Below the pieces are notes generated by a model that did not search any database, was not told the origin of the DNA, and was given only the letters and a program-made list of their open reading frames with translations. A DNA stretch of 64,000 nucleotides from Klebsormidium nitens. Taxonomy: Eukaryota; Plantae; Klebsormidiophyceae. The position numbers were made by a program, and so were the translations under genes. The stretch covers positions 186,001 through 250,000 of the forward strand of contig DF237008.1 in assembly GCA_000708835.1 (NCBI GenBank), given 5' to 3'. This document shows positions 45,391-63,643 of the stretch, piece after piece (position 1 is the first letter of the stretch; the number at the start of each line of letters is the position of its first letter).

Positions 45391-46856
45391 GTTATCTGCT
45401 CGCTAGTGAACAGAATGGTGGTCCAGGTCATGCAAGCAGCAAATTTACTTGAGCCTGAGGCTGTACCTGGGCTGTGTGCCAGCTCGCGGAGAGCAGTGTT
45501 GCATGGCGTTCCGCCTTTGGCAGAGTCTTCCTTCCCGAGAATCCAGGCTTGCTCCCTCGTGCTTGTGAACGTTTGGTTCTCCGCAAATCAGGTTTGACCT
45601 GAAGGTTTCGCTGGCGAAGGAGTTGCCTTATGATTCATATGCATCCTGTTACGGTTTCCTGTGGGATTCGAGCTTCTGGAAACAGCGTTTCGTAAGTGCT
45701 GGCAGGCTACCAGTGTATTTGCCGGACAGCGCCTTGAGGTGTGGGCCACGTACGGCAGCGAGAAGCAGGCTCCTTGGGCACTTCATCCAGTAAGTACAAT
45801 ATTCCATCTTGTGAAGCCAGCTTGAAAGAGCTTTCTCAACGGAGCTCGGCTGCTGCTGTCTAAGCTATATCCTCTGGGGGTTGCCCAGAACAGTTTCAAA
45901 GGTGTTGGGCCCCAGAAGGCGAATAAGTCAATATGCAACTTGTCTGCTGAGGACAAAGTATTTGGCTGACAGAACCCTGAGATTCTTTGAAGGGAATGAC
46001 ACTCTTCGATGAGCTCTCAAAACATGCGAATGTACGAATGTACTTGTGAGTCTACGTTTACGTGCTTCAGAAGTGTTGTTGCTTTGGTCTAGCCCAGTGT
46101 CCAGGTCTGTTGAGCGATGATTGTTGTGCGCATGTTCCTTAGAGCCTCTGGTTGCAACTTGTATTTCTAAGAGCTGGCTGTGCATTCAAAGCTCTAAGTC
46201 TATCTCCTTCTTAAAGAGGTGCATCTGCCAGCTTGATTGACCACTGAGCTAGCTAGTCATATGCACCTTGGGGTCAAAAGAGGCTGCATCGCTTTGCTGC
46301 AAGGCTGGTACCACACACACCATAGTTGCTATCAGGTTGATGTGAAAGCAGGATTTCACCCTTATCTTTCTGTGTCTGTCTCACGGGCTGTATCCTTGAA
46401 GCAAGTACTTGCATTTAAGTGGAACAATTTAGGTTCCTAACATGAAAGACACCTCATGGTCTTCTCGGAATCTTTAGAAACTTGGTCCAACCTGAGAGCT
46501 CCTGGAGGAAGTTGCAATGAAGTAGGCTTACTCAGCCATCAGGTCAGCTGTGCTGCTGAACCATCTTTTAACCAATCTAGTGTTGGAAGTTGCTTAAGAG
46601 CCCGTCGTCCTTCCGAGGGTCTGAGGGACGAGTATTTGCTTGGGAAGCTTCATCGCCAACCAATTGTTGGATGAGCACTTTGTGTCTTACAAATTGCAGC
46701 GTTCTGCTTCATTTTCTGGTGGTCGAGTGCTTCAGTGTCAATTTACCACCTGATCCTCACTTGTATTCCCCGACCAAGCTGTCTCTATCTGTGTTTGCTG
46801 ACTGAGTGATGCGGAACTGCAGGAAAACGCCAGAACCTTGTTCATGTCGCTGTTCC

Positions 46857-49800
46857 ATGGACACAGCGGGGCTGGTGGATGCATCAGCAGCAGTCGCAAA
46901 TGAAGATCAGGCTCATGCCCTCAAAGAGCTCGGAGCGGGTGTAAGGTTTGGAGCTGAAGCAGACCCTGGTCTTCCAGAAAATATCAGTTCATTCTCGTTG
47001 GACGGGTTTTCCGAAGACTCTTCGACGGTTGGTAGCCTGTCTTTACCCTCTTCAACGTTAGGAATTTTTGATCGAAGCAACGCCGGGAAGGTGTCTGTGG
47101 GGGACAGAGGCCAAGCGGTGGTCGACAGCGATTGCTGGCAGTTTGCGCAGAGCTTGGCAGCGGCCAATGGATGGCTGCCACATGGTTCGCATACAGTGGT
47201 AGAAGTGGTGCAGGCTGCCGTCAGCGCAGAGAGCGAGAGCAAGAAAGCTGGGGTTGGCGTGAAGCATGACAAAGCTGAAATGAGTGTCAGGATGGAGCAA
47301 GAGCAAGCAGACCAGATGTCGAGCAGGGCCCCTCGTAGCTGGGGTGTCGGGGCTAGTGCGGGGGGTGGCTTGGAGTCTTTGGAGGGGTCTGTTTCTGCGA
47401 GCAAGCAGGAGTTGCTTGAGCAAGCACCTGAGGGTGCCATCCCCTCTGACTGGATTGAGCAGCTCAGAGACAGCAAGTTCGATGATACGCCCAACGGCCA
47501 TGGGCCTTCAGCGCTTCAGAACGCCCACGACGGGAAGCTCCCCACCAGGCGTCCGGAGCTGAGCATCAACGTGAGCGGCCTGTCCGAAATGGACGCGGAG
47601 AGGGCCCTGGAGGACGGGAGCCAGGCATCGCCCCACGGGACCCCTAGCGAGGTGGTCAAGACGCGGGTTCGGCTGGTTAAGAAGGAGGTTAGCGAGCCAT
47701 CAGCTGCGGCAGCCCCCCTGCTCGATGGCACCAAGCGCAAGAAGAAGCGTGTGGAGTGGCCGGCACCCGATGTGGCGGGAAAGAAGCGGCGCCTGTCGGA
47801 TGGGGGTGGTTCAGGAGGTTCCGAGGAGGGTCTGGGGGCGAGCAAGAAGGTGGTGAGCCTGGACCGCTACAAGGCCTTCACGAAAGCCCCGAACATGCTC
47901 ATGGCGAAGCTGGTGGACGAGAAGGCCCTGCTGGAGGGGACGTACGTGCAGTACCGCGGCAAGCAGGACGAGGTGCTCAAGGAGGGGCATGCATTCAAGA
48001 ACGGGATCCTGTGCCGGTGAGGTTCCGGTTGTGGCCTACAGCAGACTGCTGGTGTGTCCTCAGTTACTGGTGGTTGGTAATTAGGGAGGGCTTGGCACTG
48101 ATATTGGAAAAGAGCATTCTGCTTTATCTTTTGCCTCTGGCACCTGCAGCAGGGCTGTGGAGGTTGATATGTTGACTAGCTGCAACAAAAAGTGGTAGAA
48201 GAAGTCTCGGTTGAGTTAGCATGCACCAATATGCAGAGCAATGAAGGCTGACAAACATTGAAGCCAAGCTATCCTGATTATACTTCTAGGTGCTTGCCTG
48301 TTGCTCGTCAACCGCGCTGCCGGTTACAGAACTGCATTTAGCTTTCTCTGAAGCCATGATAGTGGTTGGTTTTCCCCATCATGATGCTTGTCTGAGCACT
48401 CTCTCGCGGCCTGTACGTTACGGCCCGCAAACCAACTCTTTGGCATGCAAATCAACCCGCAAACATTCATCTGGTCCCGAGCTTTGTCAGTGAATTTGTC
48501 TCTGTGTCGATGCAAATTGCGTTGGAACTGGAAAGTGACGCTTTGCCGCAACAGCGGCCCCAGGCCGCGCTAGGTTGATAGCTTATGGTTGCCGCTTGCG
48601 ACCTGCAAAATTGGCCATTAGACTGCCCCATCTAGCAACTTATGCGCGAACCTTTCCGTCCCCTCAACCTGCAGATGCTGCAATGTGCTCAAGTCCCTGA
48701 GCGAGTTTGAGCGCCACGCGGGCAGCAGCATCCATCGCCCGAGCGACCGCCTCTTTCTTGAAAATGGCATGAGCCTCAAGGAGCTGCTGAACAGCAGCAA
48801 GGCGCCCGCAGTAGAATCGGGTCATGCTGTGTCAAAGGCCCTTGCCTCGCCTGAGTCGCAGCTTCCAGAGGGCTACGAAGACGGGAATGATGACCTGTGC
48901 AGAGTTTGCGGGGACGGGGGCGAGCTTATTTGTTGCGACGCGTGTCCTGCCACCTTCCACCTCAGCTGCATGAGCTTGGAGGTGCGTTCCTCGTCTGGCT
49001 GTCCTAGTTGACAAACTCTGTCCAGCGCACCTGGTGCAATTGAGGACAAATCACGAGGTTAAAGTTATTCAAGTGCTAAGTTCAAAGCCCAACAGAAGGT
49101 GTTCGGTTATGGATCTTATCACCTCAGCTTGTCTTTTCTCGCAAGCCAGGCTGAAGATATAACCCGTTCACATATGCGAGGTGCGCTTGTATCAGCGGGA
49201 CAGTTCGCAACGATAGAGGCATGTGACTTTGATGTTGCGGAGCAGTCATAGAGAGCTTTTTCTCACTTGGTCATTTGTAGGTCTTCATATCTGGTCCAGT
49301 CGACACTGTCTGGAGCTTGTACTCTACAAACAAAGTCGATTATTCTGATGGTGTCAATCTTGCGCTTGCAGGACCTTCCAGACGGCAACTGGTACTGCCC
49401 CTCGTGCCGCTGCAGCCACTGTGGTGCGAGCGACTTCACCCCAGACGGCTTTGACAGCCGCACCGTCCTGCTGTGTGACCAGTGCGAGAGAGAGTGTGAG
49501 TACGCTGTCACAGACACGCCCTTTGGTCAGGTCGATTGTGTAAGGTGCTATGAAGATCCTTCACTCCTGGTCTGCAGAGGATTTCAGCCAGGAACTGGCA
49601 AGCAAGGATGTCCTTTTCTGGCAGCATTTGAATACTCACTTTGAAACAGGGGCTACCTTTGTTGCTTATTCATCTCGTATTCACGTCCTCCACCTCTTGG
49701 TGAATGAGGGCTTGCATCGGCTCCTGACTACGACTGTCAAATGAGCCAAATCATGTGTCTGGTCTCGTAGGCAGGTTCTTTAAGGTTCATCTTGAAAAGT

Positions 49801-52800
49801 AGGTGCAAAAGAAAAGTGCTCAAGGTAGACACCAATCCTTGCAGTCCACGTCGACTGCCTCCACAAGATGGGACATCCCCAACTGGATTCCCCCCCAGAG
49901 GGCGACTGGTTCTGCAGTAGCAGCTGCGAAGCAATCGCCGTCATGCTGAAAGCCATTCTGGGACGGAATATGCCGCTGGGGGGGGGTTACGCGTGGACAA
50001 TCCTCAAGGATGATGGGGAGGGGGTTGCCAACCAGGGTTTATTGGGGGGGGAGGAAAAAGGGCTGAGCGAGACGGAGAGGGCCAAGAAGGGGGGGGGCAA
50101 GAAGGACGACGAGAAGCGCCAGCTGGCGTTGAAAAGCAAGGGCAAGGCAGCGGAGCTTGAGAAGGGGTACAGGTGAGGTGCCGGGAGCCTTCGGACGCGT
50201 TCTGTTGAGAGTTCTCGTAACTTGTGGTCGAAGCTAGGAGACTTTCGCTTGATTGCTTGGACGGAGTCGACTTTCTCGAGTGTTAAGGAGTAGCGTGTTG
50301 TATGCTGCAGCATGCAAAGGGTGCTTTGGTGCTTACTTTTGTGTGGTCAAGGTCGCGTCCGGTTGACAGGCAACAAACGGTTTTCAGTGGAGGCACAACC
50401 TGCCGCATCATTGCTTCACATATTTGTGATGCTCTGAATGTGTTTGCTCACTTTCTCCTTCATCCTTGCATTTGCTCTCTTGACAAAGTCAGCCCTTGAG
50501 GTGGTCTGGAAAAAGCTAAGTTTCAGTAACCTTACAATCTCTTGTCTCCGTGTCCTTCCGTATGCAGGATTGGAGCCAAGCGCGAGAAGCTCCAGGCTCC
50601 GACCGACCCGTCTCCGAGACCACCCTCCGCCAACCAGTTCCTTCCTCACCAGCCCCAGAGCCTGAGCAACGGCGTCAAGAAGTTGAGCACTCGACCTTCC
50701 GGGATAAATTCCGAGATCAGCGGCCAGGATGGCGCTATCGGGCCGGAGGGGCAGCCCAAGAGGGGCCGGGGGCGACCCCCCCGAAAGGCTAACGGGTTCG
50801 ACCATGGTGCGGCAATTGGTCTTGAGAGGGGCCCGAGTGCGGATATAATTGCGGGAGGAACCGGGTTAACCAGCCCCGTGTCAGAGCTAACCACTCCCGG
50901 GTCGACTCTGACCACCCCAGGTTCCACGCTAACCACCCCCGGGGCAGAACTGCCCACCCCAGGTGGGGGGGACCGGATGGCGGTGCTTTCGAACGGGGAG
51001 CCTGTGTCGCTGACTAGGAATGGGAAGCGGCGTGGTCGGCCTCCGAGTGCCTCCGGGGGGTCCCCCCAGAGCCCAAGCCGGGCGAGAAGCCGCATCCGGA
51101 AGCGGAAGTCGAAGCATCCCAACCAGTGGACCAGCGGGCGCCACTCAGACCAGCACACCCAGCCGAGCAGCGGTGTGAATGCCCACCCAGGCGTGACTGT
51201 GCATCCGCATGAGAATGGGCACTCCATGGAGGACAAGCATCCTGGCACGGAGGGGCATTCGAAGATGGAAAGACACGTGGGTGTGAATGGGCACTCTGGT
51301 GAGAGGAAAGGCTATTTGCCGGCGGAGACGTTTCTGCAGGGTGCACCGCTGGTGCCGTTCAGCAAGCTCACGCAGCTGCCCGGGCCGCCAGGTGGCGCGT
51401 TGCCGGAGCACAAGCCGAGCACAGACCCCTCTCTGCTGGCGGGGATAACCATCAAGCTGCGCGGGGATAGCCCCGATGGAGCCCACCGGCCAAACGGGAT
51501 CCTGCTCGACATCAAGCCGGCCGCAGAACCGGGTCTCGGGCATGGGGCGACAGAGCCCGGTGCAGGAGCCGTTTTCAGAACGAGCATCAAGCTGGAGGGC
51601 CCTCCAGGAGCGGCGCTCGGGTGTGTGGATGGGCACTCAGGGGGCCATGTTGTCTTCTGCTCTTCCATAGGGGCGGACGGAGTTGAGCGGGGAGCTTACT
51701 GTGGCGAGCCGTGCGGCGGGTGTGTCGGTGAGGGCGAGAGATGTGTCGGTGCGCTGAAGGGGGGACTTGCGCGGTGCGCGAAGCCAGGAGGAGAGCCCGT
51801 GACGGCAGTCGATATGGAAACGACAGGGGGAAATTGCGCTGGAAAAGATGAGAAGCAGTTCAAGGACGAGGCTGCAGCGGGTGGTGCATTGTTCGAGGCA
51901 AAGGAAGAAGCAAACGGGTCGGAGAACGAGGGCGGGCTCTTACTGGAGGCAGGAGGCGTGGAAGAGATGCGAGGAGAAGGGGCTGTTGCTGCGGAAGCTG
52001 ACGCTGTTATGGGGAGGCAGGAAGGGAGCGAGACGGAGGTGGGACAAGGAACTGAGGGGTCTGCTGTCGGGAGAAAGGACGGCGAGCCTTGCGAGGCCGT
52101 GCCAATGGCGGAAGACGGCCCAGCCTCAGCATCTGATTTGGCCGCAGTTGCGCGCAAGGTCGAAGCAGAAGAGAGCGCTCTTCCTGTTGTCGCCGCAGAA
52201 TCCCTCCTCGAACCTAAGGAAGAGGAGGTTGATACAGTCCGTGTCAAGCAAGAAGACAGCATGGGGGAGGGGGAAGAGAGGAGTCTTTCTGCTGAGGGCG
52301 TTTCTGCTGAGGGCGTGCCTGCGACCGCCCCCGAAGAGACGGACCCCGTGAAAGTGCTCTCGCGGTCGGTGTCGGAGATCCGACGGCTGCGGAGCGTGCA
52401 CGAGATCCCGGAGGTGCACGAGGACGAGGGCGAGTTCCAGGACATGTTCGAACTTCTGGGCCTTGTCAACGAGGCCCAGGATCTGGAAGCACAGGACCCC
52501 GCTGCCGAGGACGCGCCGCCGGCGGCCGAACAAGGCCCTGAGGTGAAGCTCGAGGCAGCGAGGCAGGAGCAGCAGGTGGAACCGTCGCAGGGGGGCAATG
52601 GGCAGGCAGCCCTGCCCCCCCACATGCGCGCGGAAGCTCCCCCCGGGGAAACAGGAGGGACGTTTAGCCTGGGGATGCGGAGGACACCCACGTGGGCCCA
52701 GGACCTGACGCTTCTGGACGGGACATACGCGCCGGGGGGGGAGAACGGCAGCGCGCTGGCCCCCCCGTCGGAGGAGCACCGGGCGCAGGGGGGTGCGGCG

Positions 52801-55431
52801 ATGCCTGGCTCGCTGAATCGGGCCCACCCCCTGCAGAGCCTGGTTCTAGCGAAGGGCGGGGCGAGGGCGGCCGGCGGCTTGGCGGCGGGGATGAGGTCAG
52901 CGGGCGTCAGCAACGGTGTAAATAGGCAGGGGTCGATGCGCACGGCGGCGGCGAGGCGGAAGAAGCTGGGGGAGGCGCTGGCGGTGATGCAGGAGTGCTT
53001 CCATCCGATCCAGGATAACCGCACCAAGGAGGACCTGATCCCGCAGATGATGTACAGTAAAAGGTAGGCCGCTGATGGGTCGAGAAATTGTGCTTTCTGT
53101 CCCTTGATTAACATGCGTCGTTCGAATGTTGCCCAGCCTGTCCGTGCGGAGCCGTATCAATCAGAAGCACAATTCTTTGCTTTTTTGGGACCCAGAAAGA
53201 AATTCTTATAGTGGAATGGTGGAGGTACTTTCTGTTGCTGACTAAGAATGAGGAGCATCTCTGCATTCAGTGTCAAGTCACAGGCCCTGCTTCTATTGCT
53301 GGGCACTCGAAGGACTCTGCTCACTCAAAACAAGCCCTTTCTGCTCCTGCTCCCCAAGCTTCCACCAACTAAATCTGACGCACCTTGTGCGCCTACCTTG
53401 AGCGTAAATATGCTTTACTATCTTTTGCACCAGTTCAACATCCTTCATACAGGTCGTGCACGTTCTTGATGTGTCTCCCGTCCCTCTCGATTCCAACTTC
53501 GTAAGATCAATCCGTCCTTTTCACGCAGGACTGCGTACCACGACTTTGGCGGGTTCTATACGCTCATCGTCGAGAAGAGCGACGAGGTGATCAGCGCCGC
53601 TGCCATCCGCATCTTCGGCACCAAGGTCGCGGAGCTGCCACTTGTCGCCACCAAATTCAGCTACCGCAGACAAGGCATGTGCCGGCTGCTGCTGACGACC
53701 CTCGAACAGGTGGGCACACAGAACGTCCCTTGCTGGACGGCTTTGCTTCGACCTTGCATACTCCCCAGATGCAGGGTGGCTCGGGCTGCTTAGCGTTCCT
53801 TCTGGCGAGGACTGTCTCATAAGCTGCCGAGTGCGGGTAGCAAAACAGCAGAATCACACGCGGGTTACTTGCGGAAGGCAAAGAGTCAGCCTCTTCACAT
53901 AGTGGAAGTTTTACTCTTCGCCTGGGAGACCATGTGAAGGGTTTAAGGGTTTAGAACACGCCAATCATAACAAGGCAAAGCAACTGGACGATTTCAGAAG
54001 ATGCTACTTCTCTCTCGTACACAGATCCTGTTCCGGCTGGGCGTAGAGAAGCTGGTGCTGCCCGCCGTCCCCGACGTGCACGCCACGTGGAAGGGCGCGT
54101 TCGGCTTCCAAGACTGCTCCTCCGAGTCCCGCAAGGCGCTCTCCGAGCTAGAAATCATGGTCTTTCCCGGAACGTGCCTGCTCCAGAAGTCGGTCGCCGA
54201 CGCAGTCTCCAACCACAAGCAGACGGCAATTTCCGCGCTCGTCGGCGCGACGCTACAGAGCGTCGTGCACGATTCCGGGGGCGCGGAGAAGCCGAACGAC
54301 GGCGTCGCGTTACCGTACTCGACGCGGTGGGAGCTGTCGGAGTGGGAGGACCTCGCGCGGGCGGCGCAGCCCCCCCGGAATGAGGAGGAAGGCGCGCCGG
54401 GGGCCGAGGCGAAGCCGGCGGTGCCGACGCTGAAAAGGAAGCGGTCGGGCATCAGTTCGCCGGTCGCTGGGTCGTCAAAGGGCTTCCGGGGATTGCTGAC
54501 GCGGGACGAAAGAGAGGTCGGACAGCAGCGGTTTGTGAGCCCGGGAGGAGCAGCCCCCGGCGTGTATGATAGCAAGGAGGTGAGTGGCAGTTGGTACGCT
54601 TGGATCTTTATCCGTATCAGACAAACAAAAAGCGGTCCTGCTAGGTGGATTTTGAAAGGGCGCTCGACATGGGCGCTCGACATCTGTCTGAGGAATGAAG
54701 CTGGGTTTAGAAGGCGAGCTGCTGCATGGTCAACCAGGCCTCTCAAAAGGGCACAAGGGCTTTGAATTGTCCTTGGCAACTCGATGGTCATCTGCGGGGC
54801 AACACGGATGTGCAGCACACTTTGCAAGTTCTTCTGTGCAGTCTCCGCCTTTCGTAGGGGAAGTCGAACCAAGGGTTACCAGCACACTCAATTGACCCCT
54901 CTTTGGCAGGCGGGAGTCGCCGTCAGTCGCCCGTTGCCAGCCAGCCAGGCCGTGCTGGGCTCGACGAGTCAGGCCCACCTTCCCCCCGGGCACGAGCGGA
55001 ACCTCAGCGGAGGCCAGCGGGACTTTGCCGGCTGGGAGGGCGTCGGGGGAGACATCCCGTCCGATCTCGGAATGGACGGCGAGGATTTCGACCACCTCTT
55101 AGCCAACGCCGAGAAGTGGTGGGCGCCCGAGGGGGGGCAGAAACACACCAGCAAGGCGTCCCCCCACGTGCAGCGCCGCGCGCTGACCAGCCCGAAGCCG
55201 TCCCCCTTGAAACGGACGAAGAGCGCGAGCCCCTTCCCGGGGGGTGCGCAGCCCGCTCCTGGGGCGGGAGGGGTGCCGAGCGGCACGACGTCCGCACGCA
55301 GCAGCTCCAGTCCTCGGGGGAAGAAACCGGGGCGGAAGCCAAAGACCCCAGAAGGTGGACCCGAGCAGTCGCTTCCGCCGTCGCCGTCCGATCGGGGGCT
55401 GGCAGCCAGGGATCCCCTGGCTGGCGGATGA
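46857..55431 (+). CDS. IDM1-like chromatin protein (TDBD/Jas-like domain, PHD fingers, GNAT acetyltransferase), ~1890 aa, 8 coding exons
   Basis: Exons 46857-48016, 48675-48981, 49372-49495, 49845-50172, 50568-53063, 53529-53709, 54025-54579, 54910-55431, all phase-compatible (5673 nt). Motifs [51 protein letters not shown]...WFCS..C, KL..AL.VM.ECF.PI.D.RT, GGFYT..E...[18 protein letters not shown]....[25 protein letters not shown]. Confidence 0.9.
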
Positions 55432-56851
55432 AGCTGCAGAAGGGGTCCAACGGCTGGGCCGTCGTCGCCAAGACGGGCGTCGCCGAAGGGGATCCCCCGG
55501 CGCTGTCGCTTGGGCCGAGCTCCCCGCAGCGGGGGGCGAAGAAGCGGCAGTACCTCCCCCCCCCGGAGCCGGGCTTCCCGGGCCCGGAGGCGGAGGGCAG
55601 CTCGCACGGGGGCCGCGCGTTCCCGAGCCCGAAGAAGCGGCTCGCGAGCGGGAACGGGGACTACCCCCCCGGCGTAACGAAGGAGACGGTGCGGAAGGAG
55701 GGGCCGCGGACGGGGCCCGAGTGGCTCGAGGCGTTACTGGCGGTCAAGTTCTTCCAGGGGTGTAAGAACCACAATGGCGAGGCGGGGAAGAGCCTCCCCC
55801 GGGAGAAGGAGTGCAACCTGTTCTGCACGGACTGCGCGGGCGGCGCACTGTGCATGACGTGCGTGGAGGGGCACAAGGAGCACCGCATGGTGCAGGTGAG
55901 GGGCGTCCCCCTGTGTTTTGTTGTCTTAGGCTGGTGTTGACTTCTGTTCGTGCTTTTTAGTCTTAGGCTTGTATGACTTTCGTTCGTGCTTAACATTCCT
56001 CTGGCATCCTTCCCAGTCCGACCTTAAACAGTTGGAAACGTCCCCGACTCTGCGGCTTGCAATCCTTCTTGCCGGACCTTAGGTTCATCAAACTCTTCTG
56101 CTTTGTCGGTAGCCTTGTTCCATTCGTTTCCGGCGTCTGGAAGCATGCTGTTGCTGTCATGAGTTATGCGCCAGTCGCTTGGCCGGCTTTTGGGCGCGAA
56201 GGTTTCCATTGACGTGCTTGCAATCTACTGATTATCATTTCCCTTCTGTTTGCAGATCCGACGGTCCTCGTACAACGACTGCGTGCGCATCACCGACATC
56301 CAACGGCTGTTGGACTTCTGGCAGGTCCAGGTGTACACCATCAACGGCGCCAAGATCGTGTTCCTCAATGAGCGCCCGCACTCCAATCCTAACCGCGGCA
56401 AGACCGCCGCGAAGAGCAACGTCACCGCGTGCGAGATCTGCTGCCGCATCCTCGTCGACAACGTGCGCTTCTGCTCAGTCGGCTGCAAGGTGGGTTGCTC
56501 AGCAGCCTTCACTTTCGGAATCAATCTCGTCACAGCAGAGTTTATGAGCTCAACCGAAGATCTGTCAATGCGCATCAGTTGTTGCGGATATCGTCTTTCC
56601 AAAAGGCGACTGCTACTTAGGATTTTGTATTCAGGTTGCCGGGACTAAGTTGCCGGAGGAGGGCTTTCCGAATTCTTATGCATGCGCCGGCCAACAGATC
56701 TCGTTTCTGGACTGCTGTGCTTAAGCTGCCCAAGGGAAAGCGGGTTTTCAGACTCTCTGACCATTGCTTCTCGTGGCCCTTGCAGCTGACCTGCATTAAG
56801 CGGGGTGCTGCTGAGGATGCCGCATTGACCTTGCAACCTTTACTGAAATGA
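55428..56851 (+). CDS. PLATZ zinc-binding transcription factor, 3 exons (start codon overlaps the upstream stop)
   Basis: Exons 55428-55895, 56256-56489, 56786-56851. Motifs PEWLEALL..FF..C..H...E.N.FC.DC...C..C...H..H...QIRRSSY, VQVYTINGAKIVFLNERP, CEIC.R.L....FCS.GCK, L..IKR...D..LT. Confidence 0.9.
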
Positions 56852-57269
56852 TAGGGGCTGAGGGATATCAGGTGGAAGGTCAAAATAGCTTAACAATAAC
56901 CGTGTCGGCTTTGGCACGCTTGTAGAGTAAAGGCAAGAGAAGACGTGTAACTTCGGAAGTTGCCCAGAGTGTGTTTGAGGACCATCTGCTGGCAGGTGCT
57001 GTTGAAGTTGATCAGGGGGGAAAGGCAAGGTAATGGGCGCGTGCGATCGCTTTGCAACTTTGGCATGGGGAGATGTGACGAAAGGTTGTTACTGAAATAT
57101 GGTCAAGATATCTTAAAGCATGGTGCGCACACTTATTTCCACGGCCGGAGCATGGAACGCCTGTGAATGCTTTTGAAATTAGTTGCCCCTGTATTATGAT
57201 GCCATTCACCTGCAAAGCACACGGGCAACTCTCATCCACCGAAAGGCTCTGAGCGCACTGGATTCGCAT

Positions 57270-59761: not shown

Positions 59762-62700
59762 ATGGCGTCTTCCGCCCTCAGCAGCATAGAGGATTCAGCA
59801 GAACAAACAGCTCAGAGGAACCCTGATCCAAAAACCGCACGGCAGATTCGTGCAACACGAAAGTCCCTCACGACAGCCTCCAAGAATGTGAAACCAATCT
59901 CGACAGCCCCGCTTCTCCACGCCAAAGAACACGACGAGGCCGGTGAGAATGCGCCTAGCACAAGTAGGAGTTCCCGAATTTCAGGGGTCCGGTTGAAGAC
60001 GTCCAAGCAGGTTTACGACCTGGTTCGCACTAACCCCAGCTACGATGGGAAGAGGTGTCACATTGTGTACCACGACAGAGTGGCTGACAGATACATGCGG
60101 ACGGCGTTGGCGGACTGGACCCCTGCGAGCGCGCAGGGAGACGTGCCATGGCACCGCGTGTGGTGAGTGCTTATGCTTGGGGGAGGACAGCTTATGTATA
60201 CAATGCCATAAGATTTGGGAATCATTAATGATCGTCTGGGGAAGTTCTACTAAGCTGGAGGGAAAATGGACCACGTGGGCTGGCTTTCTTTTGATTAGCT
60301 GAGCTTAGGACTGGACTCCTCAATGAAACGTAGGTCCTTGAGCTGATTTGCCATTGAGAGAGCTTGAAAGGCTACCTGGTTGCGAGAAACGGCTCTCCAC
60401 TTTGAGTACAAGAGACTGCGATCAGACAAGATATCGTGCGATGGCAATAGCAGTGCATTTTCCTAGGGCCCAGGGTCATCCAGAGATGTTCTTTTCAGCG
60501 TTACTTTCTTACTTGCGGCGCCATCGAAAGTAAATTCGACCCTCAAGCAGACCGAGAATGATGCTGAGAGCGAAGTCGAGCAAGGTGAAAGATTACGACG
60601 TCTTGCCCTTAGAAAGTCAAGACACCTCTCTTTCTCTCTTCCCTCTCAGCGCCTTCAATGTGCTGTCAGTTGTCCACCTGCAAATAAGCCCTTTCCAGAC
60701 TCGCTGTAATTCAGCATATATTGGACTCTCTTCTTTTTTCCAATGATGGGTTTGTGTACGGAATATCAGTGACATTAATGTGGTCTGTCTCTTTGGTGGC
60801 ACTAACGGCGTGCTGCACCATTCTGCCCTCAGGAGCGACTAACTGACCAGCCCATCCTAGTTTCTGCTCTATGAAACTTTTAGATAAGAGAACTTACTTT
60901 CTGGCACTCGCGCCTCTGCGAACTGCGGTGGAAAAGCCAGCCTTACTGCTTCGGGCGGCACTACTCACAGGTGCAAACATGCCGAGAGACACGTTAGTGC
61001 ACACGGGGCGAGCTTTGCAAGCTGACCAGCAGATGTGCCGCACTATTCTTGCAGGAATCTGTCTGAGCCAAGGGCTCATCGAGCAGAGTTTCCAAACTCG
61101 AACCATACGGCGGACTCAAAAACATACGGACAGCAGACTCAAAGCTTTTGGACAGCAGCTTGCAAAACCGAGCTCCTTCAATTTCATGATATCCCAGGTT
61201 CTTCACATACAACGGGACCGTTTTCTGGGACCGTGAGCGCCGCTTCTTCGACCACTGCCTCCTGCGCCGCCTTGCTTCCGGTGATGCCGCCCCGTCCTAC
61301 GAGAACGTGACACGCGGCGCCCAGCAACTGGCCGAAACGCTTCCTCGCGACTTCCGATTGGCAACTTTGAACCTCCTTGCAGGTCAGAGACGCTCATATT
61401 TTATGCTAAGCATCTGACAGCAACTCCACCTTCTGCGATTTTCGAAAGCATTGTTCAATGAGAGCTCCTCAGTATTTCTGGTAGTTTTGGCTCTCCCAAT
61501 AGTCCTACCTTCGCGTTTCAAAGGTGTGGTGAAAGTGCCTCGTTTGTTGGACGTGCTTCGTCCAATCACGCATACAGCTGATACGTTAAGGGCGGATAAA
61601 AAAAGGAGAGAGGTCTAGCCACCATTTACCCCGCCCCGGAAGAGCACGCTAGGCCTGTGCAGCACTTGCCTAGTCATTGCTCAATGCGTTCGTTTCTCTT
61701 CCGATTCCTTGTTCCTTCAATGATTGTCTTTTCTATCGTCGCAGGTGCCAACTTCCGCAAAGACGTGGACCCAAACCCACCCGTATCAGACGTCTCCAAC
61801 GTGCTGCGAAGTTTGGACGCTGACGTCATCATGCTCCAGGGGTGCACGAAAGAGACGCTTGAGTTTCTCGAGGAGCAGAACTGCGTTTGTGAGGGTTATG
61901 AGGTTAGTCACACGAATTTTCTCGGTAAAGATTTGCAGTGTGAAGGCACGCTTTAGCTGAACGTTTGATCTAAACATCTTTGCTGAATGGACGCGTGCTG
62001 CTTGCTAAAAGATCCAGGCATTCTTTAGTTGAGTCGTACTTTAGCAGATACTTGAGCTGGTTTAACTTGAAGTTGCGTAGGCTTCGTTAGTTCAACCATT
62101 GGAAAAGCTTCGGAGCTTGAAGTGGAAGTGCTTCTTTAAACAACAGAAGGCTGAGAAACTACGATTACGCATTCAAGGGCTCGAAACTGGCAGATTGAGG
62201 TAAAGTCCGCGTTGGGGTTGATGTCCTCCTTCTGATTGAGCTTTATTAAGCACTTCGTGCCAGACTCCATACGGATCACGATATTCAAACCTACGACTCG
62301 GTCCCGTCTCCACCGAATTGAGACGTCGCAAGGGTCAAGGGAAGAAGCCAAAACGTTTTGGATTGAATCGCTAAGCCTGAGACTCCAATGAACGTACTTT
62401 GCTACGTGTCTTGCAGATGGTCTACTCAGACTTGGAGCCTTCCGGCCAGATCACGCTCGCGCGCGCCCACCACAAGCGAGCATCCCAGCACAGCCTTTCG
62501 GCGTCGAATAAGAGAGCGCTCAGAGTCTGCCATAAAACGGCGAACGGTGTCGACTTCGAAACGTGGAACGTAGACTTTCGAGCGTCGACAGGGGAGAGAG
62601 ACAGCATTTCTGAACGTGCGGGGAGGCGGTTGAGTAAAGACGGAACGGCGCCGAGCGGAACGCATAAGACCGGAACGGAGCTGATGAGCCAGCTCGAGCA

Positions 62701-63643
62701 GTGGACGTACATCTCGGAAACTTATGCGGCCATCGTAGCGGGCAAGTTGATCCAGCCTTCCCGGATCCTCTTTCTGACAATCTGGTGTTTCCTCTTCCAA
62801 TCTCGACGTCGAAAGCTCAGATCCCCGTGCCTGAATGTTGCTCACAGTTTCGCAGCATGATGCACAACAGTGTGATTGGGCTTCAACTCAAACCGCTATC
62901 AGCTTATACGGCTTGTTTCGGTCGCCAGAAAGGCGTCGACAGTGTGTCATCTGTGGCACAGCAGAAGCAGAAAGCGACATGGCCTTCCTCGGATTCTGAA
63001 GCCAACAAAGCGACGTTCAAAACACTCTTCCGCCCACATTTCGCTTGCCCCGCGGCCGTCACAGGCGAACTTGGTTTTGGTCGTGGCGCATTTTCAGAAG
63101 AAAGCTCACAAACATCTTAAGGAAGTAATTTGAATTACCGTCAATCTGCAAGCAAGAAGAAAAACCTCGGTCCTGAAGGAAATACCTGACGGTCGACTGG
63201 CGGAACGAAAGCACTCCATCAATCAAGCCATACAGCGAGTCCGCTCTGTCTTGATCGCAGGTGACTTCGGATTCTGTGGCCGGAAAGATGACGACGTCGG
63301 GCCTTTCAGCCAGAGTGCGGATCGCGATTGGTGCGACGCGTGGCTCTCGGGTCGGCACCCGGGGGAACCCCCCGTGGACGAAAAGAACAGTTCACAAGCA
63401 GCGGAAGGGCAATCGGGGGATACTTCCCGAGCAGTTGACTCTCGGTGGGCGGTTGGAGGGAAAACGTTAAGCCGCCCAGATCGTATCTATACCCGGTCCT
63501 CACAGTTTGTGATCAAAAGCGCAAGGACTTTCAGGGTTAGCGGGTCGGACTTGTTTCAGCACTTCGAGGTCGTGGTAGACGTACACGTGGACCCGTCGAG
63601 AGCCGTCGATGACTGGGAAAGGCTGGAAACGCCTGGGCGGTGA
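59762..63643 (+). CDS. MJ1316 (DUF504) RNA-end recognition domain fused to an EEP/TDP2-like phosphoesterase domain, 449 aa, 5 exons
   Basis: Exons 59762-60162, 61198-61280, 61745-61902, 62417-62741, 63261-63643 (last intron GC-AG), phase-compatible. MJ1316 motifs TSKQVYD.V...YHDR...GDVPWHRVWFF..NG.VFWDR.RR. EEP-like motifs LDADVIMLQ, IVAGDF, D.W, RPDRIY, terminal H. Confidence 0.8.

Follow-up and report, generated by a model that had tools for sequence, protein, structure and literature searches.

One missing G in a Klebsormidium nitens assembly very probably hides a single IDM1–PLATZ gene

Does a histone acetyltransferase gene of the alga Klebsormidium nitens end in the very bases in which a PLATZ gene begins? 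In the window, the whole 64,000-nucleotide stretch of contig DF237008.1 that we analysed, an ATG at 55428–55430 and a TGA at 55429–55431 share bases, and this TGA closes a frame-1 open reading frame (ORF) at 54784–55431 that carries the IDM1-like tail. The first-pass annotation offered three explanations: translation of both ORFs from a bicistronic mRNA by termination and reinitiation, a frameshift or 1-nt assembly deletion that hides an IDM1–PLATZ fusion, or a PLATZ promoter inside a coding exon. We find that a one-G deficit in the assembly very probably hides one 10-exon IDM1–PLATZ gene (46857–56851, + strand, as are all features below) that encodes one protein.

We compared the window over 53500–57100 with assembled contigs of four public runs, which come from four studies under two organism labels and comprise three spliced RNA assemblies (three studies) and one DNA run. 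These contigs are consensus sequences, blind to minor variants, transcript starts and single molecules. The window has five Gs at 55394–55398; the contigs of all four runs have six. The additional G, inserted behind 55393, occurs in RNA runs X1 (depth 192), X17 (83) and X18 (58) and also in the contig of DNA run X2 (depth 3.5), and it is the sole indel within 53500–57100. A check of the reads for an indel at 55300–55450, as the first-pass annotation had proposed, therefore returns exactly one base in every run.

With this G restored, the frame of the IDM1 tail and the PLATZ frame become one. The real frame across the ATGA at 55428–55431 is TGG CGG ATG AAG (W-R-M-K), which makes the ATG an internal methionine codon and puts the TGA in another frame. 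Lying 11 codons past the missing G, that TGA is the first out-of-frame stop, and its overlap with a conserved internal methionine codon is coincidental. The letters of the stop/start overlap are as originally described, but the overlap exists in the assembly and is absent from the reads; it is not biological. The ‘IDM1’ stop and the ‘PLATZ’ start would both be by-products of the missing G.

Sequence composition around the junction is compatible with this site. The PLATZ frame does extend back to 54903, as had been stated, and is open over 54903–55940. Third-position GC content is high in frame 1 over 54910–55270 and in frame 0 from about 55390, which fits a switch near 55394; the claimed switch at 55380–55430 is to that extent borne out, but the signal is ambiguous at about 55270–55390 and too noisy over 55210–55390 to pinpoint the site. 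Another rise in frame 0, at 55210–55330, was considered as the switch and rejected as compositional, because there is no indel there.

The five-G count in the window is likely a homopolymer-length error of the assembly. 454 chemistry miscounts homopolymers. The published Klebsormidium genome was assembled with Newbler from 454 and Illumina reads. Around the G-run the GC content is 72–74%, and DNA contigs over 54950–55750 are missing or thin.

Relatives have the same arrangement. In four related algal sequences (L001/L002, L003, L005 and protein P0151), the equivalent exon is one open frame over the junction, and P0001, P0151, P0152 and L005:3169–4341 are each a single ORF through it; the first-pass proposal to look for the fusion in related species thus found an affirmative answer. 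The junction peptide of P0152 is exactly the one expected when a G is added to the window, and a 16-residue peptide at the junction methionine is invariant in all four relatives. Genomic DNA of L001 and L005 has the six-G run, reading CGGGGGGT at the place equivalent to 55394–55398. In L001, L003 and L005 the tail adjoins the N-terminal part of PLATZ in one frame; IDM1_C lies upstream of the pair and PLATZ downstream. Differences from L003 at codon positions 1/2/3 number 7/6/33 in the tail and 7/2/26 in the PLATZ N-terminal part, compared with 2/0/9 in the PLATZ exon and 0/0/12 in the GNAT exon. Substitutions on either side of the junction are thus mostly at third positions and, judging from these comparisons, purifying selection acts on both halves in the relatives.

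The RNA contigs define the 3′ part of the gene. Contigs of X17 (7,079 nt) and X18 (4,759 nt) are spliced and extend without a break from the acetyltransferase exons past the PLATZ stop at 56849–56851; beginning at the IDM1_C exons, they cross four GT..AG introns, although one contig across two genes is not, alone, proof of one transcript. Their loose end before 53527 corresponds to the 3′ end of exon 5. Exon 6 (53529–53709; RNA joint 53705/54021, GT..AG) encodes the GNAT core, and exon 7 (54025–54579; RNA joints) the end of IDM1_C followed by a linker. Exon 8 (54910–55895; RNA joints 54577/54908 and 55890/56251) contains the conserved tail, the junction and the first PLATZ zinc-binding region, an assignment that draws on its length modulo 3, the ORF of the relatives and the zinc-ligand pattern. 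It is the only exon of the 3′ block whose length in the window (986 nt) is not a multiple of three; with the G it measures 987 nt. Exon 9 (56256–56489; RNA joints) holds the PLATZ domain, and the coding part of exon 10 (56786–56851; RNA joints, frame) ends at the true stop, TGA 56849–56851. The 3′ untranslated region reaches at least about 57190 (the X18 contig continues 91 nt past 57100). A small cryptic intron joining the two frames was also considered; one G is all that breaks the collinearity of RNA contigs and genome across 54908–55890, so there is no such intron, in keeping with the earlier failure to find a good GT–AG pair.

Exons 1–4 and the 5′ end of exon 5 are predicted. Exon 1 (46857–48016) would supply the start codon, a low-complexity N terminus and the start of the TDBD, on the basis of its ORF, conservation in L001 from 46854, a GTGAGG donor and frame continuity. 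Exon 2 (48675–48981; Pfam matches and splice sites) would hold the remaining TDBD and the first PHD finger. Exon 3 (49372–49495; relatives, splice sites and the Cys/His spacing in the translation) would complete that finger and begin a second, which would end in exon 4 (49845–50172; relatives and splice sites). In exon 5 (50568–53063; 3′ end set by RNA), a long linker of low complexity contains two canonical AT-hooks with RGRP cores, and GNAT/IDM1_C starts in this exon. With the G, the fusion model is 6,438 nt long, a multiple of three, with no internal stops. An mRNA of about 7.1 kb would thus encode a single protein of about 2,145 amino acids with the predicted order TDBD, two PHD fingers, AT-hook-bearing linker, GNAT/IDM1_C, conserved linker and C-terminal PLATZ, a zinc-dependent DNA-binding domain. 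In the public annotation, a protein search matched no protein of 202–642 amino acids from this genome, longer queries having no reference.

Other readings of the junction fare less well. If the five-G allele were real, a strain-specific 1-nt deletion would truncate the IDM1-like protein at 55431 and strand PLATZ, with other strains keeping the fusion. The window itself reads five Gs and the lone DNA contig with six has a depth of only 3.5, but six Gs in all four runs, across studies and organism labels, the purifying selection on both halves in relatives, and the nature of the change (a homopolymer difference in GC-rich, poorly covered DNA, as is typical of assembly errors) make such an allele very unlikely. 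Alternatively, one mRNA could carry two offset ORFs, with PLATZ made through AUGA termination–reinitiation or ribosomal frameshifting. This is what the window taken by itself, with its ATGA and no spacer, would suggest. However, the sixth G is present in the RNA contigs of three studies; the mRNA is thus single-frame and has no in-frame stop at 55429, which refutes termination–reinitiation on a bicistronic mRNA as first proposed; a programmed frameshift would require ORFs that are offset in the mRNA, and both the RNA contigs and the genomic DNA of the relatives are single-frame. We give the offset-ORF reading practically no weight.

A promoter inside exon 8 could act beside the fusion and produce a short, PLATZ-only transcript from near Met 55428. 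PLATZ proteins are normally small and stand alone, and this methionine is conserved; it lies in a fully conserved block, however, so its conservation is not specific evidence of a start. Coding conservation in the fusion frame extends over the 33 residues ahead of it and the whole tail. The contigs, which cannot show transcript starts, bear no mark of one there. Such a promoter is not needed to explain the data, and we consider it unlikely.

The acetyltransferase half is of the IDM1 type. Pfam detects a GNAT fold of the IDM1_C type (PF23209) at 53527–53706 (2.7e-24; 86 bits against a cutoff of 33), covering profile positions 27–83 in exon 6, and a second piece within 54001–54765 (1.4e-13). The two matches together span profile positions 27–140, and positions 1–26 would fall at the end of exon 5. 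TDBD (4e-10) and PHD (3.7e-6) matches both lie within 48685–49011, and a second PHD-like Cys/His pattern, read from the translation, spans exons 3 and 4. The stretch YRRQGMCR in exon 6 is a putative acetyl-CoA-binding motif and is unchanged in relatives except for Tyr/His at the first residue. No Pfam match to the methyl-DNA-binding (MBD-like) region of Arabidopsis IDM1 was found in exon 1 or exon 5; this region may be too divergent for detection, or absent.

The PLATZ half carries a full-length domain. Its domain (PF04640) matches profile positions 1–78 of 79 (1e-26; 93.7 bits against a cutoff of 25). The zinc-binding patterns of the family, reportedly set out by Nagano in 2001, are C-x2-H-x11-C-x2-C-x4-5-C-x2-C-x3-7-H-x2-H and C-x2-C-x10-11-C-x3-C. 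Both Cys/His patterns are intact in the translation of the fusion model, although 17 residues, rather than the 11 of the published pattern, separate the first His from the next ligand Cys. All of the zinc ligands are kept in the four relatives. Among the best 150 matches, the nearest non-fused relatives of this part are ordinary plant PLATZ proteins (38–54% identity).

In the sequences searched, the IDM1–PLATZ fusion is found only in a narrow algal clade. No further fusion appeared among the best 150 matches to the PLATZ N-terminal part from 1.84 billion representatives, a negative weakened by exon-level ORF calls; the longer proteins among these matches have PLATZ alone, PDS5 with PLATZ, or are ankyrin proteins. 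Clusters in the protein atlas have PLATZ alone or PLATZ with a B-box only, and a word-index protein search returned one protein for the GNAT exon and two for the PLATZ exon. Scans of a metagenome collection with fused-exon and GNAT-exon alignments gave no matches; the collection evidently lacks such contigs, so this result says nothing about distribution. One locus (L004) contains a more distant PLATZ gene and, at 2 kb, is too short to reveal its upstream context. In the literature library searched, no paper names both IDM1 and PLATZ, and we found no earlier report of this domain combination.

The apparent eukaryotic ‘coupled bicistron’ at this locus is an assembly artefact, and gene models drawn from the uncorrected sequence would cut the acetyltransferase short or give the PLATZ protein a wrong start. 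Other one-base findings in this genome that suggest a ‘frameshift’, ‘recoding’ or a ‘hidden fusion’ should first be compared with reads. The predicted protein covalently joins an IDM1-type chromatin reader and writer to a sequence-preferring DNA-binding domain, apparently held by selection in a small algal clade. By analogy with the reported functions of the two families, PLATZ and the AT-hooks may tether the histone reader and acetyltransferase in cis to A/T-rich DNA, which suggests a way to target histone acetylation to such DNA. The fusion may also indicate a functional link between two plant families with no described connection. A ‘Rosetta stone’ reading, in which IDM1-type PHD/GNAT acetyltransferases and PLATZ factors partner in trans in land plants and PLATZ recruits histone acetylation to A/T-rich sites, is a speculation that we consider improbable; if true, it would supply a mechanism for PLATZ proteins, a poorly understood family.

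The junction closely resembles the homopolymer-length errors by which 454/Newbler assemblies acquire false frameshifts (PMC3568017): with one base too few in a G-run in a GC-rich, poorly covered region, one ORF becomes two that overlap, and at 55394–55398 we see no difference in kind from those cases. Arabidopsis IDM1/ROS4 proteins are histone H3 acetyltransferases with TDBD, PHD and GNAT domains that act in the active DNA demethylation pathway, and the IDM1 complex is targeted to DNA by the separate subunits MBD7 and HDP2 (PMC5339849, PMC4416881). According to Pfam, the predicted algal protein has TDBD, PHD and IDM1_C/GNAT in the same order; it differs in its very long low-complexity linker (the whole protein has 2,145 amino acids), in having no detected methyl-CpG-binding domain, and in adding AT-hooks and a C-terminal PLATZ domain in cis. 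Its PLATZ part shares the full-length Pfam domain and both zinc-binding patterns with PLATZ transcription factors (PF04640; Nagano et al. 2001, PMC60209, cited in PMC11768212). Whereas known PLATZ proteins are small (about 80–400 amino acids) and stand-alone, here PLATZ would form the C terminus of a chromatin enzyme.

In the window as assembled, the letters around 55420 (GGCTGGCGGATGAAGCTG) set a TGA at 55429–55431 across an ATG at 55428–55430. The frame-1 open reading frame (ORF) terminates at 55431 and the frame-0 ORF is open from 54903 to 55940, with high GC3 in frame 1 across 54910–55270 and, starting near 55390, in frame 0. Pfam matches to IDM1_C, an acetyltransferase domain of the GNAT type, lie at 53527–53706 and 54001–54190, and a full PLATZ domain is matched at 56256–56490 (1e-26). 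On all these points the first-pass annotation, whose headline was translational coupling of two genes through the overlap, described the letters correctly.

It had also proposed re-examining reads over the junction. We aligned contigs of four public runs to 53500–57100; these are contigs rather than raw reads, and transcript ends, minor alleles and single molecules lie beyond what they show. Three runs (X1, X17 and X18, from three studies under two organism labels) are RNA-derived, and their contigs skip four GT..AG introns (53710–54024, 54580–54909, 55896–56255 and 56490–56785); X2 is a DNA run, because its contigs cover introns. Over 3.6 kb, the sole difference from the window in all four runs is one G added behind 55393, in the run of five Gs at 55394–55398 (contig depths of 192, 83 and 58 for RNA and 3.5 for DNA). 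Exon 8 (54910–55895) has 986 nt, making it the one exon in the block whose length is not divisible by three; restoring the G brings it to 987 nt. The added G shifts translation from frame 1 to frame 0 and yields a continuous junction peptide; the TGA ‘stop’ is therefore out of frame, the ATG ‘start’ is an internal methionine and the proposed coupling is not real. RNA contigs from X17 (7,079 nt) and X18 (4,759 nt) run unbroken through every exon to beyond 57100, starting in the exon before 53527, which was recognized by a contig loose end (GATGATGTACAGTAAA) identical to the last bases of the long exon that ends at 53063. Low-depth X1 contigs cover three of the four introns (54551–54937, 55923–56280 and 56460–56813; depths of 9, 4 and 8 versus about 192 in exons), compatible with unspliced pre-mRNA or intron retention at a level of a few per cent.

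Related algae carry the same fusion. Among the matches listed by an exhaustive HMMER search that used the frame-0 portion of exon 8 as query, one was strong, the 367-amino-acid protein P0001 (82% identity). The match begins at P0001 residue 188, and the frame-1 part of exon 8 upstream of the junction (the tail) aligns with the first 187 residues of P0001 (62% identity, E = 1e-66). The tail and the PLATZ N terminus are a single ORF in that organism. A word search added P0151 and P0152, and another contig added L005:3169–4341; all four fused ORFs read SPSDRG[A/V]G[S/N][Q/G] followed by a common 16-residue stretch across the junction, where the window plus one G is identical to P0152. With this single ORF in relatives and the added G in all four runs, the alternative offered by the first-pass annotation, a 1-nt assembly deletion hiding an IDM1–PLATZ fusion, proves correct.

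The related genomic loci L001/L002, L003 and L005 share the order of the window (IDM1_C exons, fused exon, PLATZ exon and a short last exon with the stop), and close relatives have 62–93% identity to its tail. Conservation with L001 over the whole gene (46854 to 57004) is confined to exons. On either side of the junction, most substitutions are at third codon positions; differences from L003 at the first, second and third positions number 7/6/33 in the tail, 7/2/26 in the PLATZ N-terminal part, 2/0/9 in the PLATZ exon and 0/0/12 in the GNAT exon. An MJ1316-domain gene downstream (59762–63643) has the same position in a related Logan contig (L003:14058–14531), so synteny reaches beyond the fusion gene. 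L002 and L005, separate contigs of one JGI metagenome (3300060285), are near-identical but not identical over the whole fusion gene and could represent separate haplotypes, strains or sibling species.

The missing G lies in a stretch (54950–55750) that is prone to assembly error. GC content is 72–74% where DNA contigs are fragmented or absent, and X2 contigs there are broken, at depths of 2–6, or absent (55436–55677), against about 18 in flanking DNA. Assemblies tend to be weakest in such high-GC, poorly covered regions, and 454 chemistry miscounts homopolymers (e.g. PMC3568017). For the published genome, Newbler combined reads from Roche 454 and Illumina GAIIx sequencing (PMC4052687). A real strain-specific deletion, instead of an artefact, has only a slim chance of being the explanation. 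In the relatives, genomic DNA of L001 and L005 has a six-G run (CGGGGGGT), and the run is interrupted in L003. Similar exons elsewhere could hold further uncorrected indels.

The two regions belong to a single gene of ten exons on the + strand, which has one spliced mRNA and a single conserved open frame. Exons 1–4 (46857–48016, 48675–48981, 49372–49495 and 49845–50172) and the 5′ end of exon 5 (50568–53063) were inferred from canonical splice sites, from domains that continue from one exon into the next and from conservation with L001 that is restricted to exons; starting at the exon 5/6 boundary, junctions were taken from RNA contigs, giving exons 6 (53529–53709), 7 (54025–54579), 8 (with the added G), 9 (56256–56489) and the coding part of 10 (56786–56851). 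The TDBD (...GILC|R|...) and PHD fingers (...SCMSLE|... and ...CDQCERE|F|HVDCL) run on over exon junctions. Checked exon by exon, each in its own phase, the frame spans 6,438 nt (2,145 codons plus stop) with no internal stop, which with untranslated ends agrees with the 7,079-nt RNA contig.

The protein reads TDBD, PHD 1, PHD 2, a low-complexity exon with AT-hooks, GNAT/IDM1_C, conserved tail and PLATZ; the TDBD and first PHD finger were found by Pfam and the second PHD-like finger was read from the translation. Exon 5 encodes roughly 830 low-complexity residues with two canonical AT-hooks (one KRRGRPPS). It also holds a short TTPGSTL-like tandem repeat, and its middle is poorly conserved (no blastn match to L001 over 51169–52362) yet open in frame. 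The tail has an invariant 22-residue block and a GRKPK motif. A strongly conserved block of this tail, between GNAT and PLATZ (55040–55130; P0001 residues 35–90), has no Pfam match and might represent a short motif not described before, or a site of interaction. Both PLATZ zinc-ligand sets are intact (C-x2-H-x17-C-x2-C-x5-C-x2-C-x3-H-x2-H and C-x2-C-x10-C-x3-C).

This domain architecture appears to be undescribed, because our literature search found no paper naming both ‘PLATZ’ and ‘IDM1’, large protein-atlas clusters hold PLATZ alone or with a B-box only, and the longer proteins among the HMMER matches listed for the frame-0 exon 8 query lack an IDM1-type domain. Among those matches, the closest PLATZ relatives outside the fusion are small plant proteins of the ordinary kind. 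So far, this alga and a small number of close relatives are the only ones in which the fusion has been observed, a tentative distribution given negatives from exon-length rather than full-length queries.

IDM1 is a PHD-guided histone H3 acetyltransferase (PMC4416881, PMC5339849), and PLATZ proteins bind A/T-rich DNA zinc-dependently (PMC11768212, citing Nagano 2001). From these reported family roles, and judging by domains alone, we infer that the PLATZ domain and AT-hooks would anchor the reader/writer module directly on A/T-rich DNA. Whereas separate subunits, MBD7 and HDP2, supply DNA targeting in the Arabidopsis IDM1 complex (PMC4416881, PMC5339849), the alga has its putative targeting elements, PLATZ and AT-hooks, in cis.
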